A stretch of 64,000 nt of DNA from Dimorphilus gyrociliatus (GCA_904063045.1 CAJFCJ010000009.1:1096942-1160941), one strand, 5' to 3'. Positions 1 to 62,840 are shown, counted from the first letter of the stretch. The notes: generated by a model from the letters alone, not told the origin. Program-made: numbers and translations.

Positions 1-3000
1 TCTTCAGGAATTTCCCGATGTTAACGATTACAAGTTGGAGAAATTGTTTGTCATGAGTCTTCTTTGGAGTTTCGGAGCTCTTTTAGAAAAAGATGATCGT
101 ACAAAATTGGTTCAATATTTAAGAAATCATCCTTCAGGATTTTGTATTCCTTGTGGTGACCCATTCGAATGGATGGTTTCAAAGTCTGGAAACTGGGAGC
201 ACTGGGAGACCAGGGTGCCTGAGTATCATTTTCCAACAGATTATATGCCTAATTTTTCATCTATTCTTGTTCCTAATGTTGACAACACTAGAATGGCCTA
301 TATAATAGACACAATATGTAAGCAGGGTAAAGCTGTATTACTCATTGGAGAGCAGGGTACCGCAAAGACAGTTATGGTAAAAAAGCATTTAAAGACATAC
401 AATCCTGATAAACATCTAACAAAGATTTACAATTTCTCCTCCGAAACTAAACCAATTACATTTCAAAAAACAATTGAAAGTTATCTAGACAAGAGAGTTG
501 GTTCTACCTATGGTCCACCAAATGGTAGAAAAATGACAATCTTTATAGATGATATAAATATGCCGGAAATTAATGAATGGGGCGATCAAGTTACTAACGA
601 AATAACAAGACAATTGATTGAAACAAACGGATTTTATAGTCTAAATAAGCCAGGAGATTTTAATACGCTTGTAGATTTGCAATTTATTGGCGCAATGATA
701 CATCCAGGCGGAGGTCGAAATGATATTCCTCAGAGATTAAAAAGACACTTTTCTATATTTAATTGTACTCTACCCGCCGATAAATCTATTGATAGGATTT
801 TTTCCACTATTGGCCTCGGATATTTTTCCGAAAAGAGGTCTTTCCCTCAAAGAATCATTGATCTCATACCAAAGCTAGTTGAAGCAACTAGGTGATACAA
901 CTCGACAATAAGCAAAAATTTTCGTTTGTTTTTATAACTTTCAAAGTTCCCCTTATATTCGAGTTTTATCATCTAACTTATAATCTTAATATTCAGATTA
1001 ATATGGCAAAATACTAAATCAAAAATGTTACCAACGCCAACCAATTTCCATTATGTGTTTAACTTGAGAGATTTATCGAGAGTATGGGAAGGAATGCTTA
1101 AAGCTAATTCCAATGAAATTACCGAGGAATACATGCTTCTTTCTCTTTGGAAATGCGAAGTCAGCAGAGTTTTATCGGATCGTTTTGTATCAGAATCTCA
1201 TATGAAATGGTTTAATACATGTCTTACTAAGGTGGCCACAAACTTATTAGGAGATAGACTCTTGGAGCAAATACCCAATGAGCCATATTTCGTCAATTTT
1301 ATGAGAGATCCTCCAGAGTGTGAAGATGACTTTGATGAATTTGAAGCGCAATTTTCAAGACCATACGAATTAGTTAATTCGTGGCAAGAATTGACAGAAA
1401 GGATAAAAATGTTTATGTCTAATATGAATGAACAAATAAGAGGAGCTAACATGAATTTAGTCCTATTTAGGGATGCTGTTATCCACATAATAAAAATAAC
1501 TAGGATATTTGGTTTTGAAAATGGAAACATGTTGCTTGTTGGAGTTGGTGGCTCTGGAAAACAGTCGTTAACAAGATTAGCCTCTTTTATACAAGGATTA
1601 AAAACATTTAGAATTACCCTGACAAGAGCTTATAACATAACTAACTTCATAGAAGATTTAAAAACTCTTCATAAACTCTCAGGGAAAGATGGTAAGGGGG
1701 TGGCATTTATATTTACCGATAACGATATTAAGGAGGAATCGTTTCTTGAATTGTTAAATAATTTACTTAGTTCTGGTGAAGTATCAAATTTGTTCCAGAA
1801 GGATGAACTTGAAGAAATTACCCAAGATCTTATACCTGTAATGAAAAGAGAATTTCCAAAAAAATTGATAACTTTCGAGAATCTTTATGATTTCTTTATA
1901 TCAAGATGTAGAAAGAATCTTCATGTTATTCTTTGTTTTAGTCCGGTCGGCGAAAAATTTCGATCCAGATCACTGAAATTTCCTGGTCTTATTTCTGGCT
2001 GTACACTTAACTGGTTTCAGGAATGGCCGAAGGATGCTCTCATAGCTGTTGGCTCTCAAATTTTATCCGATTTAGAAGTTTTGGGAGATGATAAATTGAA
2101 AGATGGTCTTGTTGATGTTATCGGAACAATACATGATAGAGTGTCCTCGTCTTGCTACGAATACTTCAAAAGATTTCGTCGAAGAACCTTTACAACTCCT
2201 AAAACTTACTTGACTTTCGTAAACATGTATAAACAATATTATACAAAAAAAATGTCAGATGTTAATGATACCCAAAAAAGGATCCTAACTGGTTTAGAAA
2301 AGTTGGCCGAAGCTTCTCAGAGCGTCGACATGTTAAACAAAGAATTGGCGGAAAAGGAGATATATTTAAGAAAAGCAACAGAAATGGCAGACGACGTTCT
2401 AACTCGTGTAACGATAAACAAAAAAGAGGCGGAAATTGCCAAAACTGAAGTAATGAAATTGAAGATCAAAGCCGCGTCAATTGTAGACGAAATAAGTATT
2501 GAGAAAGCTGCCGCTGAAAGTAAATTAGAAGCGGCTAAACCAGCTTTAGAAGAAGCGGAGAATGCCTTAAAAACAATAAAAGCGCAAGATATACAAGTTG
2601 TTAAAAAATTGGGTAAACCACCTCATTTGATTATGAGAATTATGGATTGTGTTTTAATACTTTTAAGAAGGAAATTGGATAAAGTTACGTTTGATCAAGA
2701 AAGATCATGCATAAAACCATCATGGAACGAATCATTAAAAGCAATGAGTCAGTCGTCGTTTTTAAATGATTTAAAGAATTTTCCAAAGGATACAATTAAT
2801 GGGGAAATGGTTGAACTACTTTTACCTTATTTAGAAGCGGACGACTATAATATTGAGGTGGCTAGACGAATGTGCGGAGATGTTGCTGGACTTTGTTCAT
2901 GGACTAGAGCAATGAGAAATTTCTATGAAGTAAATAAGGAAGTTATACCGCTTAAGCTTAATTTAGCTGTTCAAGAAGGAAGATTTATTACGGCAAAACG

Positions 3001-6000
3001 GGAAGAAGATGCTGCTCAAGTATTACTTGACAGTAAGGAAAATGAATTAGCTGAAGTGCAGAAGATGTATAATGAAGCTGAAATGGAAAAGCGTCGTTTA
3101 ATGGACGATGCCAAAATGTGTCAGGAAAAGATAGACATGTCAAATGAGTTAATAAACGCCCTTTCTGGAGAAAAACTTCGTTGGACTGAACAAAGTAGAC
3201 ATTTTAACGCTCAAAAGCGAAATATAATAGGCGATTGCGTAATATGCATTGCTTTCATTAACTACTGCGGACCATTCAATCAAGAATATAGAAATATCTT
3301 ACTTACGTCATGGAGGGAGCAATTACAAAAGGCTAAAATACCATTTACGATTGACATCGATCTAATTAGTACTTTGGCCGATTTGGCAACGATAGGCGAA
3401 TGGAATTTACAAGGTCTACCGAATGATGAATTATCTCTTCAGGGACTTGATCGTGATTTAATACCTTTAAATTAACAGTAATTAAGTATCCAATTAGGCT
3501 CAATTAACACGATCACGTCTTTTAAAATATAGAATGGTATTATATGCTCATCTTCAGGAAGATATCCCCTCCTTATTGATCCACAAATGCAAGGAAAATT
3601 ATGGCTAAAAAATAAAGGAGCTATAAACGGTCTTCAAATAACTCATTTATCACACAGGTATTTTAGAAATCATCTTGAAGATTGTTTATCAATGGGGAGA
3701 CCTTTATTGATAGAGGATGTAGGAGAAGAATTAGATCCTATTCTTGATAATATTCTAGATAACAATATTATAAGGATAGGAAGAAACTTTAAAATATGCT
3801 TGGGAGATAAGGAAGTTGATTTCGATCCAAATTTTCGATTATACATTACAACTAAATTACCCAATCCAGTGTTTAGTCCAGAAATTTCTGCCTCAACCAC
3901 AACAATCGATTTTACAGTTACAATGACTGGATTGGAAGATCAACTCCTAGGTAGAGTTATACAACAGGAGAGAGCCGAACTAGAAAAAGAGAAAATTGCT
4001 CTTGTACAAGAAATTTCAAATAACAATAGGAGAATAAAGGAATTAGAATCTGATTTATTAGAAAAATTAACTGATAGTACTGGCTGTTTAATTGAGAATC
4101 GAGAGTTAATAGAAGTTTTAAACGTAACTAAGAAAATGGCGGGAGAAATTGAACAAAAATTAAAAGTTGCTGCAGAGACCACCATTAAGATAAACTCTGC
4201 AAGAAATGAATATAAATTAGTTGCAACTAGAGGTTCAATACTTTACTTTCTTATTTGCGATATGTCAATGTTAAATCCTATGTATCAAACATCGTTGAGA
4301 CAATTTCTTAAAATATTTGATAATTCTTTAATGAAGAGTGAAAGATCATTGGTCCAAGGGAAAAGAATTAGGTCTATAATTAATACATTAACCCAACAAG
4401 TGTATCATTTTGTTGTAACTGGATTATATGAGAAGCATAGATTTTTATTTACTTTGCTTATTACTTTAAAAATTGATTTGGGCAGAAATTATGTCAAAAG
4501 GAATGAATTTGAGATCCTAATTAAAGGAGGTGCTAATTTGGATATCAAATCTACTGAACCTAAAATAGCTAAATGGATTAGTGATCATGCTTGGTTGAAT
4601 TTAGTATCTTTGAGTAGTTTAAATACTTTTAATGATATAATTAAACATATAAAGCTAAATGAAAAAGCTTGGAAATTATGGTTTGAAAAAGATGAACCGG
4701 AGGAAGAGGAAATACCAAAAAGTTATGGAAAAGCCTTAGATTCTTTTCGCAGGTTGCTATTGATTAGGTCCTGGTGTCCTGATAGGACCATATCTCAAGC
4801 TAGAAAATATGTTGCCGATTCTCTTGGTGATATATATACTCAGCCGGTGTTACTCGATTTGGAGAGAATCTACCAGGATAGCGATCCAAAATCTCCTATG
4901 CTATGCCTATTGTCTATGGGATCAGATCCTACTGCATTAATAGAAATCTTAGCTAAATCTAAGCAAACTGAAGTTAGAACTATATCTATGGGCCAAGGTC
5001 AAGAGATATATGCAATTAAATTTTTAAAACAATTTATGATAGACGGTGGCTGGATTTTATTACAAAATTGCCATTTAAGCTTAAGTTTCATGATTGAATT
5101 GGTAGACAGATTGTTAGAAAATGAGCACATTCATCCATCTTTTAGATTATGGATGACAAGTGAAGTACACGAAAAGTTTCCTATTACACTTTTACAAATT
5201 TCTACTAGATTTACTAATGAACCACCTGAGGGAATTAGGGCTGGTCTGAAGAGAACGTATGGAAGTATTACTCAAGAAGTACTAGATATGTCGAATATGA
5301 TGCAATGGAAGCCTCTTCTCTATGCAATTTCTTTCCTTCATTCGGTTATTCAAGAAAGACGGACGTTTGGCTATCTGGGATGGAATATTCCTTATGATTT
5401 CAACCAATCAGACTGGAATGCTTGTATTCAATTTATTCAAAATCATTTGGATGATGCATATAAAATTGGTATTTCTTGGACAACAATCCGCTATATGATT
5501 AGTGAGGTTCATTATGGAGGAAGAGTGACCGATGACTACGATAAAAATCTCCTTAAAACCCTAATAAAAGTATGGTTTTCTGATGATATTTTCCATGATG
5601 ATTTTACATTTTCTCAAGGCTATAGCCTACCATTTTGTACTACTTCAGCAGAGTATTTAACATTTATTGACTCTCTTCCAAAAGTTGATCATCCTACAGC
5701 ATTTGGACTTCACTCAAATGCTGATATAACAAAACAATCCAATTTTGCTAAAGATGTCCTCGATGGAATTTTATCAATTCAACCAAAAGAATCGGTTGGT
5801 GGGGAAGATGTAGGAGAAACTAGAGAAACTGTTGTCTATCGTTTAGCGGAAGATATCCTAACAAAATTACCTATAGATTATGATTTTCAAGATATCAAAC
5901 AGAAATTAAATAGAATGGGAAACATTCAACCATTAAATATTTTCTTAAAACAAGAGATTGATAGACTTTATAAAGTTATCTCAACTATGAGAATAACATT

Positions 6001-7326: not shown

Positions 7327-8305
7327 ATGAGAGGAAAAAAGTTTGTATATTATACAAGTGAAATTACTATGAAATACTCTACAAGTACAACAACTACAAA
7401 ATCGAATTTTGAATTAAATAAAAAAAGAGAAGTTGTAAAAAAGTGGTCTAATTTAAAAGAAGCTGAAAGTGAAGATAGTATGGCTAATATAGTTGTTATA
7501 GTATTATCAATATTTGGCGTATTTAGCTTTATAAGGTGTACTTACAAAGCTAATAGAACTAATTAACTAAGGATCTAAATAGATATTTTAGCTTTGTAAA
7601 TTCACTTTTATTTAAAGTTGTCTGGCTTTCTTCGCTTATAAAATGGGATGGTTCAATAATTTCTTAAGTAATACTGTTGGCGATGAAAAAAGTACTCCTA
7701 AACGACCTTCTCAACAGCAACAATCAACTCCACCTAACCAAGCTCAACCAATGAATGATCATAAACCGAGAATGTCTATTAGTAAATATGGTATTATACT
7801 AGATGAAACTGAAAAACACGAAGCGGCTACGAAACCTATTTTAAAAAAAGAATCAACTGTAGCATCCCAGGGTCGACGTAGTAACATTGACGATGATAAT
7901 AATGTACTTGCGCAAAGCGTTATGAACATTGCAAATTTATTACAAAGTCAAATGAATATGAGTAGTTTAGGGAGACAATCGCTTATGGGTATGCCTTTAC
8001 CATGTAATTTCCCCAGTCAACTCAGTCAATTTGATATGAACTCGATGAATCAGCAACAATTACTCCCTTTACAATTTTTACTTGGTCAACAACCTCAGTT
8101 TCCTCAGCAAATAACAAAAGAAAATAAATCGTTCGATAACCTTCTAGCTACAATGGGTATGGGAGGGAATACAAGTGATACACAAGACGAAGAAGACGTT
8201 TCACAAGGTGGTCGTGTCTATAAGGGCACAAGAAGAGGAGGAAAATTAAAAGTAGCTGATAAACCGAGAGTAGCAACTTACTTAAGGGAGGAAAGGGAAA
8301 GTTAG
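7327..8305 (+). CDS. Orphan single-pass membrane protein, about 298 aa; exons 7327-7535 and 7618-8305 (start uncertain)
   Basis: Phase-2 intron AG|GTGTAC...TTAAAG|T joins ORFs 7309-7566 and 7643-8305 into one hydrophobic helix IVVIVLSIFGVFSFISCLAFFAY, followed by a Q/P/M-rich tail. No family recognised. Confidence 0.7.
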
Positions 8306-9089: not shown

Positions 9090-10289
9090 CTAAATATTTG
9101 ATCGATTGTCCCATAAACAATTTTGATCCACTTCATCTATCGAATTATAGCCACACATCGCCATATTTGTTTCAAGGTCACTTTTTAATAGCGAAAACAC
9201 ACTATTTAATCCTTCGCTTCCCTGTAAAAATATAATTATTTATATTCAATCTTTAATTGTAGTGAAAGAAAGAATCTTACATTTACAACTAATGCACTGA
9301 TGACTGGCTTAGCTATAAATACCATTTTAGCTCCAAGAGCTAAAAATTTTAAGATATCACCTCCAGTTCTTATTCCACCGTCGGCGAATAAAAGAATTCC
9401 TGATGCTTTAACAATTGGAGCAATAGATCTAAAAGCATCAATTGTAGCTGGGTAATCGGAACTATTTCTTCCTCCATGATTAGATACCCAAATACCAGCA
9501 ACACCAGTTTTAATAGCTTCTCTTGCGTTTTTTGGTGAGAGAATACCTTTAACAATGATGGGTAAAGTTGTATACGTCATTATTCTTTTAACAGATTCCC
9601 ATGTATAAGAATCATTTGTCCACTTATTAACTGAGTTGGCTGCTTTTGCATAATCGCAAAAACCCTCAGGCATATTAGGCAAGTAAACAGTACTTCGAAA
9701 TTCTTCGTTTAGAGTGGGTCTGTCAGGACTGAACGAATTGTGATCTAGTGTTAAAACAAAACCGTTCACTCCTTCGCGTTCAATGCCCTCGATGTAGCTC
9801 CTTGTGATAAATTCTTCTGACAGCATATTGATTTGCATAAAAATCAATGTATTTGGAGCAGTTTTTCTTATGTCTCTCAAGGGTTGAGTACTATACTGAC
9901 TTACGACATATAATACTTTTGAATATTCAGCAGCCCTTGCTGTAGCCAATTCTCCATCTTTATTTGTTAGGGAATGTAAAGCGCAAGGTCCTATGCCAAC
10001 TGGCATGGAGAGTTCTTTACCCAAAAGAGTTATTTGGGTGGATCGTTTACTAACGTCAACACAAATATTTGGACATAAGAACACTCTAGAATACAAACAA
10101 AAATATAATTTGTATAAAAAATGATAACAAAGATAAGTTAATTGTATACTTCTGCAATGCTTCTTCATTTCTTTTCAATCCTGCTGAAGAGTTTGGTCCC
10201 TTATAAAAATAACTGTTAGTTAAATCATCTAACTTTTCTTTTGCCGCCTCCTCATATTGTTTAAGACTTGTAAAAGTTTTATCACTCAT
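9090..10289 (-). CDS. FMN-dependent alpha-hydroxy acid oxidase (HAO family), divergent, about 358 aa; exons 10289-10150, 10085-9281, 9221-9090
   Basis: YEEAAKEKL, STQITLLG..SMPVGIGP, LPIIVKGILS, VSNHGGR, DGGIRTGGDILKFLALGA; last exon GSEGLNSVFSLLKSDLETNMAMCG recovered by hand; GT-AG introns in consistent phase. Confidence 0.9.
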
Positions 10290-15640: not shown

Positions 15641-18219
15641 ATGGGGTCTGCTAGGAAGAGACCCACAGCTAAGAGTAACGAAAAAGGTAAGATTGTATGC
15701 AAATTCATTATAGCTAGTAAAGATATATCTTCAAGAATATCGACGTGAACTTTGATAAGAACTTAAATGAATAATATTAACTGATAATAATTCGATGATA
15801 ATGCTAAATGTCATTAGAGAAATATTTTACTAAACCTAACAAGTTTTTTTTATATAGTGAACATTTTCTAATGAAATATTTGTTTACAACCTATAAATTC
15901 AAAAAGCGTAGCATCCGCAATTGCATGTCTCTTTGAATATCAATTGTAAATGATGAAATTTAACATCTGTCATTAATAATAATCACATCAGCTCACTCTA
16001 ACACTCTTATATTTAATTTTAAAGCAGTTTAGACACGTAGCAAATGTCTCTTATTGATTATCATGCATATTTTAAGTGATACTTTAAACAAAAAAAGTTT
16101 GCATTTGTTTACAGAAGAGAATAATGGAGTTAAACCTATGAGGAATAAACAAACTACACATAATGCAAGAAAACCTAGAATAAGTCCTACGATATATGCA
16201 ATCTTTCTCTTCCTTATCATCATTTTTAGCGTTGTTGTTTATGTTACATTTTTCAGTGACTCCAAGTCAGGACTTGGTAAGTATTAAAAATTCAATTCTT
16301 TAATATCAACCAGATACCAATGTATATAAATATTACAAGCAGATACTTATTAACGTATCAGGTATTTTAAACATCTGATTATTCAATTTGTGTACGTACT
16401 TTTACCATCTTATATCTGGATGTTAACAAAAAAAATATGGATTAGCACATCCAAATGTGTTCATTGCTTTACGATTTACATGATTAAAAATATACATTCC
16501 ATAGTTTTACGAAGCGGCATATGATTCTTGTCGCCACCTATATATGGCAAATGACACGTTATTTTCTCTGTGAAACAGATAAATATTTATATTCGCATCC
16601 GTCATCCTCCTCCTCCTCCTCCTCCTCTTCTTCTTCTTCTTCTTCTTCTTCTTCTTCTTCTTCCTCTTCATCTATTAATAATAATAATAATAAAAATTCT
16701 AAGGATTCAAAAGACACTAAACGTTCATTGGAAACAAAGGGAAAGCCACAAAAAGTATACAAGTTTGCCGATATCACTAATAAAGAGGATAACAAGATTA
16801 GAAATCTTCTTGATGATGCTGATAAATTACTAAGTGACGTAAGGATCTTAACAAATACTTTTTTTCTTATCTAAATAATTTAGAGCTATTTGATTTCAAT
16901 CTTTTTTTAACTATTATTAATATAATTATCGCTTTACTGTAGGGCAATATCGAAGAAGCTAATAAGAAATTTGATTCTCTCCTTATGAAGTATCCAAGTA
17001 GTCCCAGAGCTAACTATGGCAAAGCCTATTCTCTAGATTTGTTATCTGAGAAAAAACAGAGTAATACTTTATTGGAAGCATCAATATCAGCTTATTCAAA
17101 AATATTAGACTTAGATGATGTACCATCGGTATTATTATTAAAAGCAGGTCTGAGATTGTCCAATAGACAAGAGTTCCGTGGTTGGTCTATAAAATCTGTT
17201 GTTACAATGAAAAAGTTAATTCAAAAATTTCCGGATAAATTGGCGCTCAGAAATAAATTGGGTATAGGCTATATGATGAGTGGGAAAATTGAAGAAGCAA
17301 GAGAGGTTTTCAAAGGTATTTTGCTAAAGGACCCTAACGATGGATGTGCTCTTGTTCATTACGGATTCATTTTGAAAACAACCGATAGAAATCCCAATGA
17401 GTCTATATCATATTTACAAAAAGGAATAGCCAGTAACGATCCGGAAACCCAGCATGGACGGTTTTACTTTCATCTTGGTGACGCTCTTTACAGAGTCAAT
17501 CGGATGGAAGAGGGCATGAAAGTCTACGAAGAAGGGGCAAAAAAAAATATTTTCCTCTCCAAGTGGCAGCGTTCACTTTATAACGTAGATCGTCTGACTG
17601 GTAGACCATGGTGGACATTGGAACAAACAGGTGTAGCCAAACAGCTTGATCATATAGCCAAAAATTGGAAAACTATACGAGACGAGGCTGTAAGTCAAAT
17701 GAATACTAACTCTAATCTTTTCGAAAAAGAAGACGAGGATTTAACAGATACAGGTGAATGGCACCAATTAACTCTTTTTCAAAGAGGTAAAGAGGTTTCA
17801 AAAAATTGTAAAAGAACACCCAAAACCTGTGCTCTATTTTCCGAGTTTTCTGCTGCCACCACGTGTAAAAGAGGTCAAATCAAGTTCTCTATTATGAAGC
17901 CTGGGGTCCACGTTCACCCTCACACTGGCCCAACCAATTGCCGACTTCGTGCTCATTTAGGTCTTATTATACCCGAAGGACCCAAGATAAGAGTTCAAGA
18001 CTCTATTCGGTTAGTTTGTCATTTTTTTAAATAAGATTTTGTTATCAATAAACTTTTTTTCTTTGTAGAGGTTGGAAAGAAGGTGACTGGATCGTATTCG
18101 ATGACTCATTCGAACACGAAGTTTGGCAAAATGGAACCAGCTTAAGAATGGTCCTAATTGTTGACTTTTGGCATCCAGAATTAACATTGAACGAAAAAAA
18201 AGTGCTATCTCCAATATAA
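15641..18219 (+). CDS. ASPH: Aspartyl/asparaginyl beta-hydroxylase, about 577 aa; exons 15641-15686, 16115-16276, 16314-16361 (tentative), 16579-16838, 16943-18009, 18069-18219
   Basis: Type II TM helix, KYPSSPRANYGKA, TPR region, GRFYFHLGDA, HTGPTNCRLRAHLGL, FDDSFEHEVW, VDFWHPEL. Confidence 0.93.
16602..16691 (+). repeat. Coding compound microsatellite (TCC)n(TCT)n(AAT)5, read as Ser24-Ile-Asn5 in ASPH
   Basis: Read directly from sequence; lies in the frame of ASPH exon 16579-16838. Confidence 0.9.
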
Positions 18220-18632: not shown

Positions 18633-18778
18633 CAAGTAAAATTTAGCTTTGATTGATAATCGACAATTTCCTTAGGAATTATGCTGAGATAATAATCAAA
18701 ATTTAAGCCATATCCTTTTCTATGAATGGTGAAAATATTATTTTTGTTTTGCAACTGACTGGATAAACTAAAGCGGAG

Positions 18779-20686
18779 ATGAAGTATATATTTTTTCTGC
18801 TTCAATTACAAATGGTTTTTTCGAAGAAGCCGAATATCATTGTAATGTTTATGGACGATATGGGTTGGGGAGATTTAGGAATATATGGAAATCCTGCAAG
18901 TGAAACTCCTAACTTGGATAGATTAGCTGAAGAGGGCATTAAATTTACTGATATGTATACGGGTAGCTCCATCTGCTCGCCATCAAGGGCATCATTGTTG
19001 AGCGGAAGATTACCAATAAGAAATGGTTTTTATTCAGATGGTCAATTTGCAAGAGCATCTTACGCTCCTCAAGTTGTGTTGGGTGGTATTTCCGATTCAG
19101 AAGTTTTACTTCCAGAAATTCTTAAAGGAATTTATATAAAATTATATTAATAATTTATCTCAAATCAAATTCTTATCTAAATTCTATTCAAATTCCTTTA
19201 AGAAAATGGATATCAAAATAAAATTGTTGGAAAATGGCATCTAGGTCACAGGGAAAGATATTTACCATTAAATCATGGTTTTCACGAATGGTTCGGGGCA
19301 CCCAACTGCCATTATAAATATGATACAACAGTACAACCAAATATTCCAGTATACAAGAATAGAGAAATGACTGGAAGATATTATCAAGATTACAAAATTG
19401 ATCATAAAACTGGCTTAGGCAATCTCACTCAGTTATATACACAGGAAGCATTAGAATTTATTGAAAGAAAGACTAAGCAAAACGAGAATTTTTTCCTCTA
19501 TTGGGCGCCCGACGCAACTCATACGCCACTCTATGCATCTAAAGAATTCAGAGGTCACTTTATATTTATTAAAAAAAGTTTATTAATTATGCAAAAGTCC
19601 TATTATAGCACGAAAGAGAGAATTGTTTACTTAGGGAAATTGTAAAAATTCTTTTATGGGATATAAAAGTTGGGTCATTTAAGAATACTTCTTTATATAT
19701 GAGTTTGAATTTCTTAAGATTTACATTTCTTTTTAAAAAAAAATATCCATAATTCTCTTTTTAAAGTTGAGAGGAAAACTAGACGATGTAAATAGAACAA
19801 TAAAGATCGTAAACGATTTTCGATAGTTACTGTGAGTATATAGAATTTTTTTGTAGGAAAGTCGAAACGCGGTCTTTATGGAGACGCTATTATGGAAATA
19901 GACGCTGGCGTTGGAAAGATAATGGCTCTTCTTAAGAAACTCGATATCGATAAAAATACTTTCGTTTTTTTTTCTTCCGATAATGGAGCGGCAACATACG
20001 CGTTCACAAATGGCGGGTCCAATGGACCTTTTCTTTGCGGAAAGCAAACAACTTTCGAAGGGGGTTATAGGCAACCGGCATTGGCAAGATTTCCCGGAAA
20101 GATCCCTGCTGGCCAGATAACTAATCAAGTATCTTTGCTTATGGATCTTTTACCAACGATTTTAGATTTTGCCGATATTAAAATGCCAAGAAATCTAACT
20201 TTAGACGGTCAATCAATAAGAAATGTGATGGAAGGAACGTCAAAGGTATATGACAGGGGCGTTTTTTATTATAGGGGAAACGCTTTGTTTAAATCTAGAT
20301 ATGGGTTCTATAAAGCTCACTTTTATACGTGGAACACTCCTGCTGAAGCAATTAAAATTGGCTATCATTATTGCCCAGGTCAACGGATTGAGAATGTCAC
20401 AACCTCTCAGATGACTAACTATACAGACAAACCATTATTGTTTCACCTAGGAAGAGATCCAGGCGAGAAATTTCCAATAGATCCTACCACCGAAGAATAT
20501 CGTATTGGCCTAGCACCAATTTTAAAAATTGTTCAACAGCATAAAGATAAATTGATAAAAGCAAAGCCAGAATTCAATCTCTGTGATTTAGCAATTCAGA
20601 ATTGGGCTCCTAGAGGCTGCGAAAAAATTAACAGATGTATGAAAGCACCGCCATCATACGTTTACAAATGTTTTTGGCCATATTGA
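18779..20686 (+). CDS. GALNS: N-acetylgalactosamine-6-sulfatase, about 509 aa; exons 18779-19127, 19203-19553, 19857-20686
   Basis: Signal peptide, [17 protein letters not shown], formylglycine motif [33 protein letters not shown]-terminal [11 protein letters not shown]. Confidence 0.93.
19128..19202 (+). other. 75-nt non-canonical GA-AG intron
   Basis: AAAG|GAATTT...TTTAAG|AA gives [22 protein letters not shown]; the interval contains no GT or GC and has an in-frame TAA at 19148-19150. Confidence 0.78.
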
Positions 20687-20878: not shown

Positions 20879-23800
20879 CTATGATAGTTCGCCAATAGGT
20901 GCATTAGCCAGCCACAGATCATGAATAAAATTATAAAGACGATCTGACACTGATACTTTGTAGGGAGTCGGATTCAGTGCTCTTTTATGATCTTCTCTTA
21001 TCTTTGCCAATTCTTGCTTTGCATGATTGCGAATATCTATCAAATGTGGTAAATTTTCCTGCAGTTTTTCGTTAGCCCAGTATAATTTGTAAAGAGGCTC
21101 AATTCGAGTAGGTGAGACGTAGGCTCGTTTAGATTCGTGAAAAGGATGTCTGACTAAAACTTTTTCGCCAGCTTTTGGAGCCGGTTCGTCTAATCTTTGC
21201 AAAAGATCCACTAATGCATGGCCATCTTGACTATACAATCTATATACATTCTTTGCACCTGGCATAGTGACTTTTTCGACATCTTCCGACAATTTAATTC
21301 TGGGCAAACCTCCAACTTCAACCAATTTGAATACACATCCCAGTGCAGGCTGCTTTTGACACGTGACTAGATGTGTACCAATACCAAAGCCATCAATAGC
21401 ATGTCCTTGTTGATTAAGAGAATGAATTGTATCCTCATTAATGTCATTACTGGCAATAATCGTTAGATCAGCAAGGTAATCAATTTCTAGTTCCATTGAT
21501 ATTGTCATGAAAGCTCTTCGAACACTATTGGACAAATAGGCTAAATCGCCACTATCCAACCTAACGCCCATCGGTCGGTATCCCAATGAGTGCAGAACCA
21601 AGCTTACAGCCAAGAAATTTGGCATACCACTTCTCTGTACATCGTACGTATCAACCAAACAAAGGAAGGACGAAGGAAAAGAGGCAGCGTATGCAATAAA
21701 GGCGGCTAATTCGCCTTTATTAGTTTCTCCAGGAATTATATTTAATATAGACGAAATCTTTTCCAACCATTCTACTGTTTTTTCAGCAAGATTAACTGAT
21801 TGTGCACCAGTTTTACTCGCCAGAGTTGCGTGCTTTACTTCTTCCAAATTTGTAAAAGACGTCACAAATGCGTGCGCGTGCGTTCCTTTAACAGGAATAT
21901 CAAATAGTTTACCAGCTAAAACATTACTGGTACCATCAAATCCTCCAAGATAACAATATCTGGAAGCAGAAAGACCTCCATCGGGTCCTTGTGCTCTTCT
22001 TAAACCAAACTCTAATAGGGCCTTTTGATTTCCCGCCGCCAAACGAAATCTTGCGGCATTTGTCGCAACTAAGGATGCATAATTTGTCAAATTCAACAAT
22101 GTCGTCTCCAGCAATTGAACAATCGGTAATGGACCCTCAACTCTCATAACAGGTACCTTTGGAAATATCACAGACCCTTCTTCAACTGCGTATAACTTAA
22201 TATCTTTCGTGCTGACAGTTTTGAGGTAGTCAAAAAAAGCTGGTTCAGTTGGTGGAAGGACTGAACGTAGATACTCAATATCACACTCAGAATATCGGAA
22301 ATTTGATAGGAATTTCAGCACCTATTTGTTTTAAAAAAATGAAAGTAAACTTAATCGCGTTTGTAAATATAAATAAACCTCGCTTAAACCAGCGTAAATG
22401 GTAAACTCTCCACCAAACGGATTTTTGCGGAAGAATAAATCGAATACGGCGGTTTCTGACATTTTACCGCTTTTCCAGTAGGCATAAGCCATAGTAATTT
22501 GATAGAGATCTGTTGAATAAGTCAATAAATGAACATGTAGTTTGATAATTATATCATGTAAATTATGTATATTATATGCATGTAGTGTCTTATCCTAGTA
22601 CTGTATAGCAATAATAATAACGACACAAATAGGCTACACATGATTGAAAAAGCAAATGGCTTTAAGCTATTTAAATAACCTAAAATACTAAGAAAATTAC
22701 AAAAACCTATTTAGTTCCTAGGTTTTGTAATTCCCAATAAATATATTATAAATTTTGTCCATTATTGTTTTTATCTAGTTTTTTTGTCAACCAACTAGAT
22801 ATTTATGTATACACAGCATATGTATATATTTATATATCAGAATAAATATATGTATATAAAAGTTCCCAGTCCAATCAAATCATTAATTTCCGAACCTGCA
22901 CAATGACATATATCGATCAAGTAACTTTGAAATTTCTTATTGTTATTTCAGTGTTTATTTCAACAAAAATGCATGTTTTCTTTTTTATTTTATAGTTAAA
23001 GCAACTGTGTTAAAATAAAAAAAATGTTACTTAAAAAAAAGAGAATAAAAATCAGATAAATTCCATTGTTTTATTGTTAAATGAGTTTTAAAAAAAATTT
23101 AACTAGAATGAATTATTTCGCATTAGATTTTATAAATTATCACACTCTTTCACACCACATATATATATATATATATATTTATATGTATAATTCTAAGGAT
23201 TAGCAAATCAATAAATATTCCCCCATGTCATTCTAAAGTAGAATTGTTGTTTATCAGATCGTAAAAGTTGCTAATTTTAAATTTTATATATATTATATTT
23301 TTTTCTTTTTTTTATAAATGTCCCAATTTATAATATTCAAGAAAAGACTTCATTTATTACTGATATTACCAAGACAACATTTCCCCAATCGAAATTACAT
23401 TTTATTACGGAAATCATTTGATTAAATTTGTATAATTACTTATTTACGAAACCAAAAATTGATAGATTTTATTGAAATTTCCCAATTACCGCACGCAAAG
23501 CGCTTTTCCAACCACATCGATTCCGATCAGACGACGAAACGATGCTTGCATAATGAATAAGCTTTGTGATTGATCGCTCAAAAATCGGTTTTACTGGAAA
23601 AAGAAACGCTATTTGACGTTTGTCAACAAACTATTCAAGTTGAAATAGGCCTATTAGTAATGTCGATTCTGTTCGTTATATAAGAATATATGCAACAATA
23701 GTAACATTAATCTTTCAATTAATCGAACCTGGTTTATTCAAGGGAGAGGAGGCTAAATATTGGTAGAATCAAATTACAAAATATTGCATTCAATTCCACT

Positions 23801-55580: not shown

Positions 55581-58532
55581 ATGCCCAGCTCAAGCAGTAT
55601 ATTGAGCGAACTAGATTGGGATGAAGGAATAGCCATCCCTGTTGCTAATGCAGAAAATAAGTCATTAGAAGATGAAATCCAAAAGAAACAGAAGAAAATT
55701 GTTGCCCTTCAAACAAAACATGGAAAAAATGTTGAGAGAATTGGTGCCATTCAGGATCATATGAAAAATGTCAAGCAAGAATTACATCATACCCAAAATT
55801 TAGTTAATGCCAGAAAGAAAGAAATAGATACTACCGAACATTTTCAAAAGGTAATCCTTCGGTACATTTTCTTAATCTATTAGTGAAACAAATTTACTAA
55901 CATTATATACGATAGATTTAATTTTAAATACATTTTTTTATCCGACATACAACTTAATTAGCTTAAATAATATTTATTTAAAGGTTGCCAGTAGAGAAGA
56001 CGGAAGAATTCAACAAGAACTTATCAGACTTGGACGCGATTTCAATGAACTTAAAGAACGCTCTAATCGATATGAGAATAACATCTTTAAACAAACTCAA
56101 CGAGTCGAAGAGTTAAAATCTCAAATGAATTGGGATGAAAAAGCCTTAGAAGCTTGGTTGGAAGAGTCCGCAAGAAAGGACGAAGATGCCATGACTATTA
56201 TCAAATACACTCAACAAGATGAAGGAAGAATCAAAGAACTTACTCTTAGGATTGAACATTTGAGCGAAGAGTATAAAAAGAAGAAAGAAGAACTTGACAG
56301 AGAAACGACAAACACTCATACAACTCAGGTTGAATTAGACAAGACAGCTGAAGAATTTAGAAGAACTCATGCTGAAAGACAAGAGCTAATTCAACAATGG
56401 GAGCACACCATTGAACAAATGCAGAGAAGAGATCATGAAATGGATTTACTTGCCGGACATTTAGCTGTAGTTAGAAACCAAGTTCGAGAGAATGAGGAAA
56501 CAATAAAGGAGAAAGAGCAATTTTTGGAAAATGAACAAAACAACAATGAAGAAAAAGATAAGCAAATTCAAATAACTGAAAGAACAGCCGCTAGGTTAAG
56601 ATTACAATACCAAGAGGAAGAATTGGCAAGAGACCAATTTAATTCTGAATTAGAAGCCTTAAAACGAACCTGTGACAGAACAGCTCTCGATTTAGAGCTA
56701 ACAAGATCTCAAATTACTCAATTGAAGAGAGACACAATTGACAAACAACAGCAATTGAAGGATGCAAAAATCGTAAAGGAAAATCTTGTGGAAAAGCTAA
56801 AGGTATGGTTTTCAAACTACTTCTTATGAATTTAATAGAATTTAATTTATTTCCATTATTTCAATAGATTGCCGAAGAGACTTCGATGAGTGCTGAAGAA
56901 AGGGCTCAACAAATGGATAAACTCTTAACGGAAGAAGAAAGACGTCAAGTTCAGATGAAAGCTGAATTAGAGAGATTAAGAGAACAACACTTTCAGAAGA
57001 GCGAAGTTTTGAATAAATCTAAAACCACAGAAAGAAATATTGACGCTGAAATTCAAGGATCACGTGCCACTTTAAGGAATTTAAATGCCAAATTGACAAA
57101 AATCGACACGGAGAGCTTAAAACAACAAGAGATTCTTTACAATCAAGATTTTACAATACAACAATTAGAAAGAAGAATGGGTAGAATGCAAGGCGAAACC
57201 TCAAATGAAGATAAATTGAGAATGGAGGCGAAAATTAAAGAGTTAGTGGATGTTTTGAAAGAAGAGGAAAACACTAAAGCTGTGTTAACTCAACAATTAA
57301 AGAGATTACAAGATGACATACGAAGAGTAAAGAGAGACTTAGAAAAAGCCAGTCTAGAGAAGAAAGCGTTGACTTCAAAAATTGAAGAACTAGAATTACA
57401 TTCGGATTCTTCTCACAGAGAATTGAAAAACGTTTCAAATGAAAAACAAGAATTAATGGTGGAACACAACGTCCTCAAGCTAGAATTAAAAAAATTAAGA
57501 GATACCCTTAACTTTAAAGCTGATGATGTGTTGAGTTTAGAAAAAAGAAGATTACAATTGGAAACTGCTATGAAAGAAAGATCTAAAGAGATTTCCTTAC
57601 ATCAAGATATGCTTATAAGTCAACTTAGAGCTGCCGAAGATGAGAGACAGCATGTCAGTTCGGAACTCCACGAACGTATAGCCAAAATTGACAAATTGAA
57701 AAAGAGATACGAAATATTAATGGTATCTATGGCCCCTCCTGAGGGAGAAGAAGAACAATCACAAGCTTTCTACGTCATAAAAGCCGCTCAAGAAAAAGAG
57801 GAGTTGCAGAGAGATGGTGACGACCTAGACGCAAAAATTAGAAAAGCTGAAAAGGAAATTCGAGCTTTGGAAAATACTCTAAGATTAATGAATTCTAGAA
57901 ACGAAACTTATAGAAAGAGTTTCAATAAAGTTCAGGAAACTTCAGAGGAGATGGAGGAAAAACAAGCCTTGGATGAACAACAAAGAGCAGTAACTGACAA
58001 GTATAAATACAAGAAGAGACAAATTCGTGAAATGAGTGAGGACTTGAGAACAATGAGCAGTACTCTTGACAATTTATGTACAGAGGAAGAGCAAATTTCC
58101 GATATGATGGATGACATGCAAAGAAAAAAACAAAAATTTAACAAAGAACTTGAAGAGCAAAAGGTTCGACTAGAAAGAGTAACAAAGCAGAATAATAGAC
58201 TAAAAAAAGAACTGAAACTTAAAAAAGATGCTCCTGAAGATAAGGATATTGAACTTCGGGGGGCAAGAGAGTTCAATAAGAGTGTAATGAATGAAATTGG
58301 AGAAATGGTCAGTCAATTCCCAGAAATGACGGACAACATTTATACGTATTTTACGCAAGCAAATCTCCCTCCACCATCTGCTCCTTCTTCAGCTAGCTCC
58401 TCGGCTAGAAGTTCCATTGCTTCTGTTCGATCTTCGAGAGCAAGCGCTGTTGATGTTGGGCAATGGGCTACAAGATTAAGTGGAAGTAGTTCTTCATCTG
58501 CCAAATCTTCTGCCAGATCTTCAAGACGCTAA
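55581..58532 (+). CDS. CCDC39: Coiled-coil domain-containing protein 39 (axonemal 96-nm ruler), about 917 aa; exons 55581-55850, 55984-56802, 56868-58532
   Basis: LSELDWDEGIAIPVANAENK, MNWDEKALEAWLEES, QAFYVIKAAQEKEELQRDGDDLDAKIRKAEKEIRALENTL. Confidence 0.93.
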
Positions 58533-59722: not shown

Positions 59723-60312
59723 GTGAGCTATAAAATATGTATTATTTGATTATATGTGAATTTTACGAACAAACTTAATTAATTTATTAACTCTGCAGGA
59801 CCTCGAAAACCTTTGAGAGTAAACTTTAAGTCCTTTTCTATAAATAAAGAAGCTTTTGATATTTTTAACAAGATACAAGACAGTGTTTTTAATATTGGAA
59901 CTCTTATAGGTCCAACGATTTTTAATGATGAAATTATAAACCTTAATTCCAAAGAGAAATACAATTCAGCGACCAATTCGTTAGAAATGTTTAAAAATTC
60001 TGATAGAATATATCGAGCACAGATAACTTTTATTGATAAAGAAGGATTTCTAATCAAAAGGTTCTTCTCATAGGTTAATTAAATATCATATAAAGAGAGA
60101 ATCTTTTACAATTATTATGAAATGCATTCTAAAAGGACTAGATACGGTTTTCAACCTTCAAGAAAATTGGCAAAAATTATCAATTATTGTAAAAGATTAG
60201 AAAGTAATCTCCTCTTAATGAAAAATCAGAATATCATTTAAGTAATATTATGCATTCAAACGAGATAAAATACAATAAAAAATATTTAAAAATGTTGTAA
60301 AAGACTAGTTAA

Positions 60313-62840
60313 TTAAACTTCGAACAATTCTCTCATTTCCTGAAGCGTTGCAAATAGTGTCTTTGAGAATCTCGCTGAGTCAGTGTTTCCAGCGCTCTTC
60401 TTACTAGATATATGAAAAAAGAGGCGATGTTCACCAGCAAACATGTAAGAAACCCCATAACCATCATCAGCAACCGGTCCGAAACCTCCTCCAGGACAAA
60501 GCTTATTACGATATGCTTTTAAATCGCAAGGGGGAGAATTTCTAATTTGTTGCTGGGGTTGTTGTGAAGTGCTCAAGGTCCAAGGCATGAGCAAAGCTTT
60601 CCGAAGAAAGTCGCAGTCTTCATTGAATCCCTTACCAACAACCAGTAGCGCGAAGAGATGTCTATCGAAACCTTTTCCTTTCATAGCATCTCTGCAAGCT
60701 TTTTGATGATTTCGGCACGTTTCCCTCATGAGTTGTCGACATTTTTCGGTATCTCTTGGGGTTTTCACCATTTCTCTATTTGGAAAAATATATGCTAGTG
60801 TAAAAAAAAGCAAACGCATCAAAACAATTACCTTATCCATTCTGCCATTACTGAAGTTAATGGACGAACCGTTTCGGTTCTGCCGTACAGAAACAATCTA
60901 GTCATGGATGCCTCGTAGGTCAATGCCAGTTTTCCCCCAGAATCCTTAAAGTAAGTGTATTGGAAAGCACATTGAACAAAACCATCCGGGCTAACCTTAC
61001 ACATTTTCATAACATCTTTTCCAAATTTAGTGTGTTCAACAACTTGCAAATCAAGATCTTCATTGTTTTGCTTAGCAAAATTTCTAGAATATTCTATTTG
61101 AACATTTAGATCGGGATTTGATAGATCCCATTGCAGCATTTGAGGCTTATACAACTTTGCCTGTTTATAGCCTATATCTAAAGTATGTCCATCATCATCG
61201 TAAACCTTTTTTAATATTTCGTATGTCATTACATATTCACTTGCATGTCCCATAACCGGTGCATCACCCCAAGCGTGTTCGCAATTTGTTCCAAAATGTG
61301 CGTCAGCAAAAACGATTACTTGAAATGATTTATCGAACCAATGACTAGTTTCTCCGTCTCCGTGCAATAAGTACTTTCCTCTTTCTGACCAAGAAGATTT
61401 ATTTTGAGTTTCTAAGCAAACAACAAACAAAGCTGTTTCAATGGCGTCTAGAGACTCTCTATTGAGGCCAGATGAAAAATATCTATTTCTATTCCTTGCC
61501 CAATCCGATCTCTCAATTGCTGTTAAAACGCTTATGCATCGACTATTTTTATTGTAATCTTTATAAGCCGAATCTGCGTCTCTGATAATCCAATGCAATT
61601 GTTTTTCTAAGCTGACAGGATTTAGAGGTTTTGAATTGCTATCGATTATACTCAGCTTGTAAAATAAGCCCCTTCTCATCACAATAATATGCTTTGAGTA
61701 TGGTGATGTCACCAGTTTGTCCAATTCTTCACCAGGAATTCTCGTAGTTCCAAATATTCTTTCATACTGCGACATGCATAGCGGCACCGTATCTCTAATT
61801 AGCAGCGGTTCAACTTCCTCTCTCTTGTATTTATGACGAAATTCTAAATATGTATGAATAAGAAAGGCAGCTCTAGCTTCTTGTATGGTTGTTCCTCTCC
61901 AATCAGCATTATCTAAACAGTAGTAATTAGAATTTATCGCTAGAGGAACACGTGACATTAGGTACACATATTTCTCCCACCAGTCAGACACGTAATTAAA
62001 ACTCCACCACGATTTCAGTATAAGAACTCTTTGCAGTTTGAGACCAACGCCCCTTTCAAATTCCTTTGCTTCGCTTTTCAATTTATCAAATTCTTTTTCA
62101 GTTGTTAGAGGTTCAACAGACAGCAGCCATTTATCGATCGTATCTGCTAAATTAGGAACGGGTAGAGTTGGCAATGAACTTTGATAAGAATTCGTAGACG
62201 GATGATAACCAGATATAAGTTTTACGAAAAACGCCCATACTGCAGTTGACCAGCTAATTCCTCTTCCAGGTCTCTCATCCATCCATCCTGTGTAACGCAA
62301 TAATAAGCGTAAAGTCCATCTCCTAATGTACATTAAGCCGATAAAGAAAACCACTCCTCCGGCAAATGATACAGTAACAATTTTTAAAGGCTTTGGATTT
62401 TCTACTGGTATATATTTTTCCAATTTGTGCAATTCATCAGTCAGAGGTTTTGCAAATTTTGGTTCTTTTGCAAGAAGTAGTGAAAAAGCACCTGTAGTTA
62501 CTCCTAAATTATAAATATGGGTTGGCCATAGACCATTAGCGAGTAGGTTCCTGTTGAAAATGAAAATTATTAAAGTTATAAAGGCTAAATGAGCACTAAT
62601 TATGTAAAAAAAATTGATTATAATTGTCAGATATATTTATCAGAACAAAAGTAATAAATAATTCAATATATCCATGTCAAACACGCCAGAGAAAGGAAAT
62701 CTAGTTGATAAGTACCTCGTTGTATAAAATCGACGGACCCAATTCTTCCGCAATCCCCTAATAAAGTCTTGAGTTGGTTCCCTTCCCTCCTCCAAATGAT
62801 AAACATTAAATTCTGCAACCGCTTGACGCGCCTCTGCCAT
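60313..62840 (-). CDS. CPT1: Carnitine O-palmitoyltransferase 1, about 768 aa; exons 62840-62716, 62550-60832, 60775-60313
   Basis: MAEARQAVAEF N-terminus, TM segments, YVSDWWEKYVYL, catalytic EHAWGDAPVMGH, LTYEASMTRLFLYGRTETVR, GGGFGPVADDGYGVSY. Confidence 0.93.

Follow-up and report, generated by a model that had tools for sequence, protein, structure and literature searches.

The GT at the start of an intron is among the most invariant signals of eukaryotic genes, and in most genomes donors with GA or GG are exceedingly rare; their frequencies in human are 0.006% and 0.014%, respectively (PMC5714493). Common use of these donors was formerly known only from a copepod and from larvacean tunicates. 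In the kind of splicing described for Eurytemora affinis and Oikopleura dioica, G[AG]-AG introns are common and make up about 10% of introns. The GA-AG and GG-AG introns of E. affinis follow a simple rule, an obligate exonic AG upstream of the donor and an A at position +3 (PMC5714493), which is also described for E. affinis together with O. dioica (PMC7072748). The miniature marine annelid Dimorphilus gyrociliatus has a genome of 73.8 Mb with a median intron of 66 bp (PMC7854359), and a literature search linked neither Dimorphilus nor Dinophilus to non-canonical splicing or introners. The genome paper relied on PASA, EVM and AUGUSTUS and does not mention non-canonical, GA-AG or GT-AG sites (PMC7854359); its pipeline evidently takes only consensus sites.

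The D. gyrociliatus window analyzed here, meaning the whole stretch of 64,000 nucleotides (GCA_904063045.1 CAJFCJ010000009.1:1096942-1160941), contains at 18779-20686 a gene that is, as judged from its sequence, GALNS (N-acetylgalactosamine-6-sulfatase), a type I sulfatase: the Sulfatase and Sulfatase_C domains (PF00884 and PF14707) are detected in its exons, the CxPSR formylglycine motif is present, and the top match is GALNS. Human GALNS (PDB entry 4fdi) is the top PDB match for exons 1 and 2, with E values of 1.6e-39 and 4.8e-47, and the three-exon model (Table 1) yields a full product of 509 residues. The first exon opens with an ATG at 18779, encodes a signal-peptide-like N-terminus and the catalytic CSPSR motif, and ends in ...CTT AAA G, the final G being the first base of a split GAA codon. 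An insert at 19128-19202 interrupts the orthologue here, with ...LLPEILK translated upstream, and (E) followed by NGYQNK downstream; across the exon 1-exon 2 join, the spliced product reads LLPEILKENGYQ. In the alignment to 4fdi, exon 1 stops at residue 103, and the second residue of exon 2 matches residue 106. The split codon G/AA (Glu) is thus residue 104 and Asn residue 105, and the 19127/19203 join is gapless. The Pfam Sulfatase profile passes from position 88 to 91 across the same join. A first-pass annotation of this DNA had claimed that removal of the insert restores the exact sulfatase spacing, which agrees with the 4fdi series 103/104/105 and with the profile. A NAPRT reading frame that is 100% identical to DgyrCDS7489 of D. 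gyrociliatus adjoins GALNS. Word searches of proteins returned matches among which the D. gyrociliatus GALNS protein itself was absent, and a 509-residue protein (P0244), considered as a candidate for it, belongs to another annelid and is 59% identical.

Table 1. Coordinates, in the window, of GALNS features and of the other introns pinned by homology or clear consensus
Feature	Position	Strand	Description	Fold z
GALNS exon 1	18779..19127	+	Translation; Pfam Sulfatase profile 1-88; 4fdi residues 4-103; RNA contig from 18700	
Cryptic GT	19086..19087	+	Donor evidently used by the public 473-aa model; removes 14 conserved residues	
5' helix arm	19119..19133	+	9 exon bases and intron +1..+6 (TTCTTAAAG/GAATTT); perfect 15-nt inverted repeat	
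GALNS intron 1	19128..19202	+	75-nt GA...AG, phase 1, lineage-specific position	-3.3
3' helix arm	19190..19204	+	Intron -13..-1 and 2 exon bases (AAATTCCTTTAAG/AA)	
GALNS exon 2	19203..19553	+	4fdi residues 106-219; Pfam profile 91-184; RNA contig	
GALNS intron 2	19554..19856	+	Canonical GT-AG, 303 nt; spliced and unspliced RNA contigs	+2.0
GALNS exon 3	19857..20686	+	Stop TGA 20684-20686; Pfam Sulfatase profile 202-301 and Sulfatase_C	
Dynein A intron	892-996		GT-AG; strong donor-to-branch-region stem	-3.9
Dynein B intron	3443-3532	+	GG-AG; weaker stem starting at donor	-1.2
HAO intron	10086-10149		GT-AG	-0.7
ASPH-like intron	16839-16942		GT-AG	+0.4
ASPH-like intron	18010-18068		GT-AG	+0.1
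NAPRT intron	22322-22378		GT-AG	+1.7
CCDC39 intron	56803-56867		GT-AG	+0.5
CRAT intron	60776-60831		GT-AG	-0.1

The public sulfatase model spans window positions 18845-20686 and encodes 473 residues; it was placed via a 21.6-kb locus of CAJFCJ010000009.1 that is identical to window 10879-32492. Its range of 1842 nt less its coding sequence of 1422 nt leaves 420 nt, or 303 + 117, from which it follows that the model starts at an internal ATG (18845) and splices from 19086 to the acceptor at 19202. The donor at 19086-87 is the nearest GT upstream of intron 1. Its use had been predicted to delete 14 conserved residues, and the public model does exactly so. With those 14 residues and the signal peptide lost, the model is wrong at this locus.

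Removal of the insert from RNA was assessed in the assembled contigs of run X2 (2017), the library kind being deduced from the contigs themselves. For intron 2, X2 contains one contig in spliced form (depth 287) and one in unspliced form (depth 42.5), and hence behaves as an RNA library. It has no mismatches to the assembly over the exons and intron 2 and thus derives from the same strain. A contig of 859 nt, at a depth of 212, runs through 18700-19124 and resumes at 19200-19554, skipping 75 nt. Three letters of the join are ambiguous (AAG occurs at both 19125-27 and 19200-02), so that it is equivalent to 19127/19203. Four registers are equivalent (AA..TT, AG..TA, GG..AA, and GA..AG); GA..AG is chosen as the sole one of the four with a 3' AG. 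Among sampled words, X2 contains 95%, and the missing 5% is the share that touches intron 1. Among the X2 contigs none retains intron 1, whereas intron 2 is partly retained, and the donor at 19086 is unused. The first-pass annotation had placed a GA-AG intron at 19128-19202 and had named use of 19086 or retention of the insert as findings that would overturn it; the junction seen in X2, together with the gapless GALNS join, is the one it proposed. Splicing of intron 1 is at least as complete as that of the canonical intron 2, and the lack of a retained form, in assembled contigs as opposed to raw reads, weakly favors constitutive removal.

The composition of the insert is as the same annotation described. 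Its 75 nt comprise A31 C9 G2 T33, the two Gs being the first and last bases, and translation continued from exon 1 would end at a TAA at 19148, the first of four in-frame TAA codons. The chance of a G-free interior is ~5e-4 at the ~10% G of other introns in the window, for a feature that was picked post hoc. The donor stands in the context AAAG/GAATTT, with an exonic AG and an A at +3.

Introns of the U12 type start with the donor [AG]TATCCTT, and their branch site resembles TCCTTAAC and is placed roughly at least 10 nt upstream of the acceptor. Assignment of intron 1 to this type was rejected: its donor is GAATTTAT, and its sole TCCTT-like string (TTCCTTTAAG) lies directly against the 3' splice site. 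A mirtron was likewise rejected, since the hairpin, although of pre-miRNA size, has arms that are unrelated in a relative (below) apart from the first 7 and last 13 nt. A-to-I editing of the helix is unable to turn GA into GU. Searches with Rfam gave no match in the window at gathering thresholds, nor in intron 2 at E<=1.

A diverged relative of D. gyrociliatus emerged from an exon 3 word search through a Logan protein (P0121) that is 88% identical, and two genomic contigs (L002 and L003), from different runs, are syntenic with the D. gyrociliatus locus, NAPRT adjoining. Their exons are 81-84% identical to those of D. gyrociliatus at the nucleotide level, with third-codon identity of 53-66%, and 88-92% identical in amino acids. 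At the identical codon the relative has a 96-nt GA..AG intron (L002 613-708). Its termini, GAATTTA...AAATTCCTTTAAG, are the same as in D. gyrociliatus, its interior is unrelated, and its third codon is an in-frame stop. The interior contains 12 Gs, so that the G-free interior of the D. gyrociliatus intron is incidental. Being common to both lineages, intron 1 is older than the split from this Dimorphilus-like lineage. Although silent sites are close to saturation, amino-acid identity of the downstream exons stays at 88-92%, and these exons are thus translated in frame. Stops in both inserts and strong purifying selection on the exons that follow require that the insert be removed in vivo. Between the lineages, intron 2 keeps only the GT of its donor (GTCACT versus GTTGTT), whereas intron 1 keeps +1..+7; a 57-nt block within intron 2 is conserved in the relative.

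The site of intron 1 lies within a single 36-codon exon, (N/S)AYTPQ...GYRNKIIGKW, both in an annelid, Ridgeia piscesae (L004), and in a mollusc, Lottia gigantea (L005); this exon is flanked by introns before AYTPQ and within the W codon of GKW/HLG. D. gyrociliatus lacks both flanking introns, and its own intron falls between their sites; its position is thus lineage-specific. A new position is not peculiar to the GA intron, since the canonical GALNS intron 2 was not found at its position in Ridgeia or Lottia, nor the NAPRT intron in Capitella. Both of these introns are hairpin-free, and the notion that a new position implies a hairpin was discarded.

A second non-GT donor occurs in the dynein gene of the window, which is orthologous to DNAH5. 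The exon that ends at 3442 reaches residue 3589 of DNAH5 (8j07) and the exon from 3533 resumes at residue 3590; the alignment is gapless for 300 residues to either side. This alignment pins 3443-3532 on the plus strand as a predicted 90-nt GG...AG intron in the context CAG/GGA (CAG/GGACTT), with A at +3. There is a canonical alternative, from a GT at 3453 to an AG at 3557 (3453..3557), but it would replace the conserved NGIICSSS. The gapless 3589/3590 join upholds the earlier description of this intron as a second case, and both non-GT donors (GALNS AG/GAA and dynein AG/GGA) obey the signature AG/G[AG]A. Eight GT-AG introns were pinned by homology or clear consensus, so that non-GT introns account for two of the ten pinned in the window, a non-random sample from which VPS13 is left out. 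Exon chaining that maximises open reading frames, tried for the VPS13 introns, gave wrong calls for dynein intron B and GALNS intron 2 and was dropped. The first-pass annotation had interpreted the two donors as a lineage tolerance for non-GT donors, and the findings support this as the right reading. Of the accessory features it had listed, the G-free interior, the length divisible by three and the AA at the start of the downstream exon are unneeded, and the first of these is not conserved.

It is judged about 85% probable that 19128-19202 is a genuine, constitutively removed GALNS intron with a GA 5' end, spliced by the major spliceosome. Removal is most likely by that (U2-type) machinery, a chemistry that we infer. 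The donor in this lineage would need only an exonic AG, a G at +1, and an A at +3, a relaxed rule that would be the same as in E. affinis and O. dioica. Intron 1 lies at a site that is intron-free in other spiralians and is older than the split from the Dimorphilus-like relative.

A 15-bp helix across the splice sites was overlooked in the first-pass annotation. The helix is perfect and spans both splice sites (Table 1), with an imperfect extension to arms of 38 nt. The minimum free energy fold is the terminal hairpin (-17.6 kcal/mol, z = -3.3), a stability equaled in 1 of 200 shuffles, and shuffling the 100-nt segment 3000 times gave a 15-bp stem once. Apart from one poly-T/poly-A pair, the window contains no other perfect repeat of at least 15 bp. 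Perfect inverted repeats of at least 12 bp show no general enrichment, with 7 observed versus 5.9 expected. Inverted-repeat matches elsewhere lie at 7542-7599, a possible UTR intron, and at 60100-60198, a 3' UTR hairpin. Seven of the eight canonical introns in the window lack a comparable fold (z from -0.7 to +2.0). The relative has the identical 15 bp and three further pairs (z = -2.9).

The helix has been kept while the interior was wholly replaced. The odds are roughly even that it serves to mark out the two splice sites, or to bring them together, in an intron whose donor has poor pairing to U1. Against such a role, a donor buried in a helix would be expected to hinder U1 binding. The arms are identical in the two lineages, so that compensatory changes, which would prove that pairing is under selection, are absent. 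They also overlap the zones of linear splice signals. However, intron 1 keeps +3..+7 and -13..-8 while the donor of intron 2 keeps only its GT, which favors constraint beyond generic splice signals.

The best surviving alternative accepts a spliceosomal intron and takes the helix for a functionless relic, either of an inverted-repeat (MITE- or introner-like) insertion or of snap-back repair, that seems conserved only through its overlap with the donor, the pyrimidine tract and coding bases. Such an origin fits the lineage-specific position, the terminal inverted repeat, the AAG on either side of the junction, and the lack of observed compensatory changes in the arms between the two lineages. 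Introner- and MITE-derived introns have terminal inverted repeats, and the perfect 15-bp repeat agrees with this, though 9 + 2 of its bases are exonic. Transposon-born non-canonical introns with terminal inverted repeats and target site duplications are described for Fritillaria borealis and algae (PMC11282704). However, intron 1 has no second copy in the 64 kb when searched against the window with blastn-short, and an element family derived from it is unsupported within the window. The interior is fully turned over while 19 intronic arm bases are unchanged, including +4..+7 and -13..-8, and the AAG repeat is expected by chance from an exonic AG/ and an intronic AG/. The sequences CTTAAAG and CTTTAAG at the junctions match at 6 of 7 positions, which is explicable by the splice consensus and by the palindrome itself. 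A relic is thus a possible but somewhat doubtful account of the helix.

A non-spliceosomal route, in which an endonuclease and a ligase act on the helix, as proposed for euglenid introns or in tRNA/HAC1-type splicing, is very unlikely. The ends do pair across both cut sites, and the donor is a poor match to the standard U1 5' end, as such a route would have it. The borders are nevertheless spliceosome-like (AG/G.A ... YAG/), and there is no bulge-helix-bulge or IRE1-type loop motif. Distances from cut to stem differ among the three hairpin introns (GALNS intron 1, dynein GG-AG, and dynein GT-AG), which argues for a pairing-aided spliceosome over a nuclease that measures structure.

Reverse transcriptase is well known to skip hairpins that are flanked by short direct repeats, which gives rise to artefacts. 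It could accordingly be held that no splicing takes place in vivo, and that the gap reflects skipping between the AAG repeats or an allele or copy without the insert; the evidence for removal comes from one contig of one run of unrecorded kind. That account is scarcely credible. In-frame stops are present in the inserts of both lineages, yet the downstream exons are strongly constrained, and the removal this requires in vivo excludes skipping as the whole story. In addition, a retained contig is absent at a depth of 212 while retention of intron 2 at a depth of 42 was assembled, X2 is of the same strain (0 mismatches), and the insert is present in the DNA of both lineages. Finally, long-read assemblies do contain single-base errors, but the idea of a true GT donor, with an error of assembly or sequencing behind the A at 19129, is in effect refuted, as had been anticipated, by GA in the assembly and at the same position in two independent contigs of the relative from different runs, and by a second non-GT donor with the same context in the window.

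Yeast "zipper stems" bring the donor near the branch site and can promote splicing, and lie inside long canonical introns. The GALNS helix resembles them in that intramolecular pairing joins the intron ends, but it includes both junctions and exon bases, in a 75-nt intron with a GA donor. The nonconventional introns of euglenids (PMC12501133, PMC11170887) share non-GT-AG borders and end pairing with GALNS intron 1; they are not known to have a G...AG rule or an exonic AG, whereas the GALNS borders are spliceosome-like. The transposon-derived introns of F. borealis and the introner elements of algae resemble GALNS intron 1 in that their borders are non-canonical, their positions are species-specific, their ends carry inverted repeats, and a short direct repeat stands at the junctions. 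However, the F. borealis borders (Henriet et al. 2019, via PMC11282704) are mostly AG-AC or AG-AT and not G[AG]-AG. Introners moreover form multi-copy families, whereas GALNS intron 1 is single copy in the 64 kb. It is also old, being common to a diverged relative, with the arms alone retained, which points to selection over recent insertion.

[quoted passage not shown] The border, the exonic AG with A at +3, constitutive removal and an unshared position, which are among the marks of G[AG]-AG introns, are all found at this locus. The comparison supports intron 1 as an intron of the E. affinis and O. dioica type in a further phylum. The setting differs from that of E. affinis, whose genes are long and intron-rich: D. 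gyrociliatus belongs to the Annelida (Spiralia), and its genome is compact, with few introns and long exons. An annelid that can be kept in culture, with a genome of 74 Mb, would provide an independent case, and gene models with non-GT introns can be corrected, as here for GALNS.

The terminal helix across both splice sites is a feature beyond the E. affinis and O. dioica kind: pairing of intron ends is unmentioned in the papers that describe those species (PMC5714493, PMC7072748), whereas a conserved helix of 15 bp is present here, with a function that is plausible but unproven. That end-to-end pairing may offset a donor unreadable by U1 is a testable idea, and it bears on the survival of new introns after insertion and on relaxed recognition of the 5' splice site. 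Taken together, Dimorphilus (Dinophilidae) may be the third independent animal lineage, and the first spiralian, whose major spliceosome routinely accepts G[AG] donors, with a class of introns that are clamped by a conserved helix, are born from inverted-repeat insertions, and have the helix in place of the lost pairing between U1 and the donor; this joint reading is tentative and falls a little short of an even chance. The GALNS intron would be an RNA-verified and evolutionarily conserved example of it.

The probable start of GALNS is ATG 18779, upstream of the start in the public model, since the additional hydrophobic, signal-peptide-like N-terminus that it encodes is conserved in a diverged relative of D. 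gyrociliatus and is spanned by an RNA contig. A second public model, that of NAPRT, probably lacks one 5′ exon, as judged by alignment: the Owenia and Tubulanus homologs match upstream of the annotated ATG, up to position 22513, immediately after an acceptor-like TTCAACAG.

Features discussed in the text, in window coordinates (slashes mark splice boundaries)
Feature	Position	Details
DNAH5-like gene intron	892-996	Canonical GT-AG; fold
Likely GT-AG intron with inverted repeat	7537-7617	AAG/GTGTAC ... TTTAAAG/
GALNS N-terminus	18779-18847	Public start ATG 18845; upstream ATG 18779
Coral-run (X1) RNA matches	19253-19445; 20076-20252	Exon 2; exon 3
Conserved block within GALNS intron 2	19775-19832	Identity with relative; L002 (genomic contig of the relative) about 1255-1312
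NAPRT 5′ region	22492-22520	Minus strand; homolog alignment

GALNS intron 2 contains a block of approximately 57 nt that matches the related lineage at every position; the remainder of the 303-nt intron aligns to L002 at random-level identity. All frames of the block contain stops, and no match to it was found in Rfam. On its 3′ side, D. gyrociliatus has ACT/GTGAGT where the relative has CTG/GAAGTT. Regulatory element, poison exon and small RNA are all possible readings of the block.

RNA from GALNS was also found in a coral metatranscriptome run (X1), in which two contigs are approximately 99% identical to exons 2 and 3. This degree of identity places D. gyrociliatus, or a near-identical strain, in the coral sample, possibly as aquarium fauna.

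The canonical donors among the pinned introns of the window are strongly degenerate (GTGATA, GTTTAT, GTATAC, GTAATT, GTCACT, GTATGG, GTAAGG, and GTTAGT), with G occupying +5 in only a few of them. Intron length is a multiple of three in 5 of the 10 pinned introns. In the fold of the canonical DNAH5-like intron, a long stem links the donor with a CTAAC-like motif (z = −3.9 against shuffled sequence; none of 200 shuffles equally stable), and end-pairing therefore also occurs outside the non-GT introns. A perfect 12-bp inverted repeat (arms 7542-7553 and 7588-7599) lies inside a further probable GT-AG intron, which is a short distance 5′ of the ATG (7643) of the next gene.

The positions of three D. 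gyrociliatus introns (GALNS 1, GALNS 2, and NAPRT) were compared with the Ridgeia, Lottia, and Capitella loci. For all three, the nearest intron in the other spiralians is 7–23 codons away, and ancestral introns are missing from D. gyrociliatus at the compared GALNS and NAPRT loci. This pattern, in a comparison of three introns, fits awkwardly with the published view that ancestral introns have mostly been kept.
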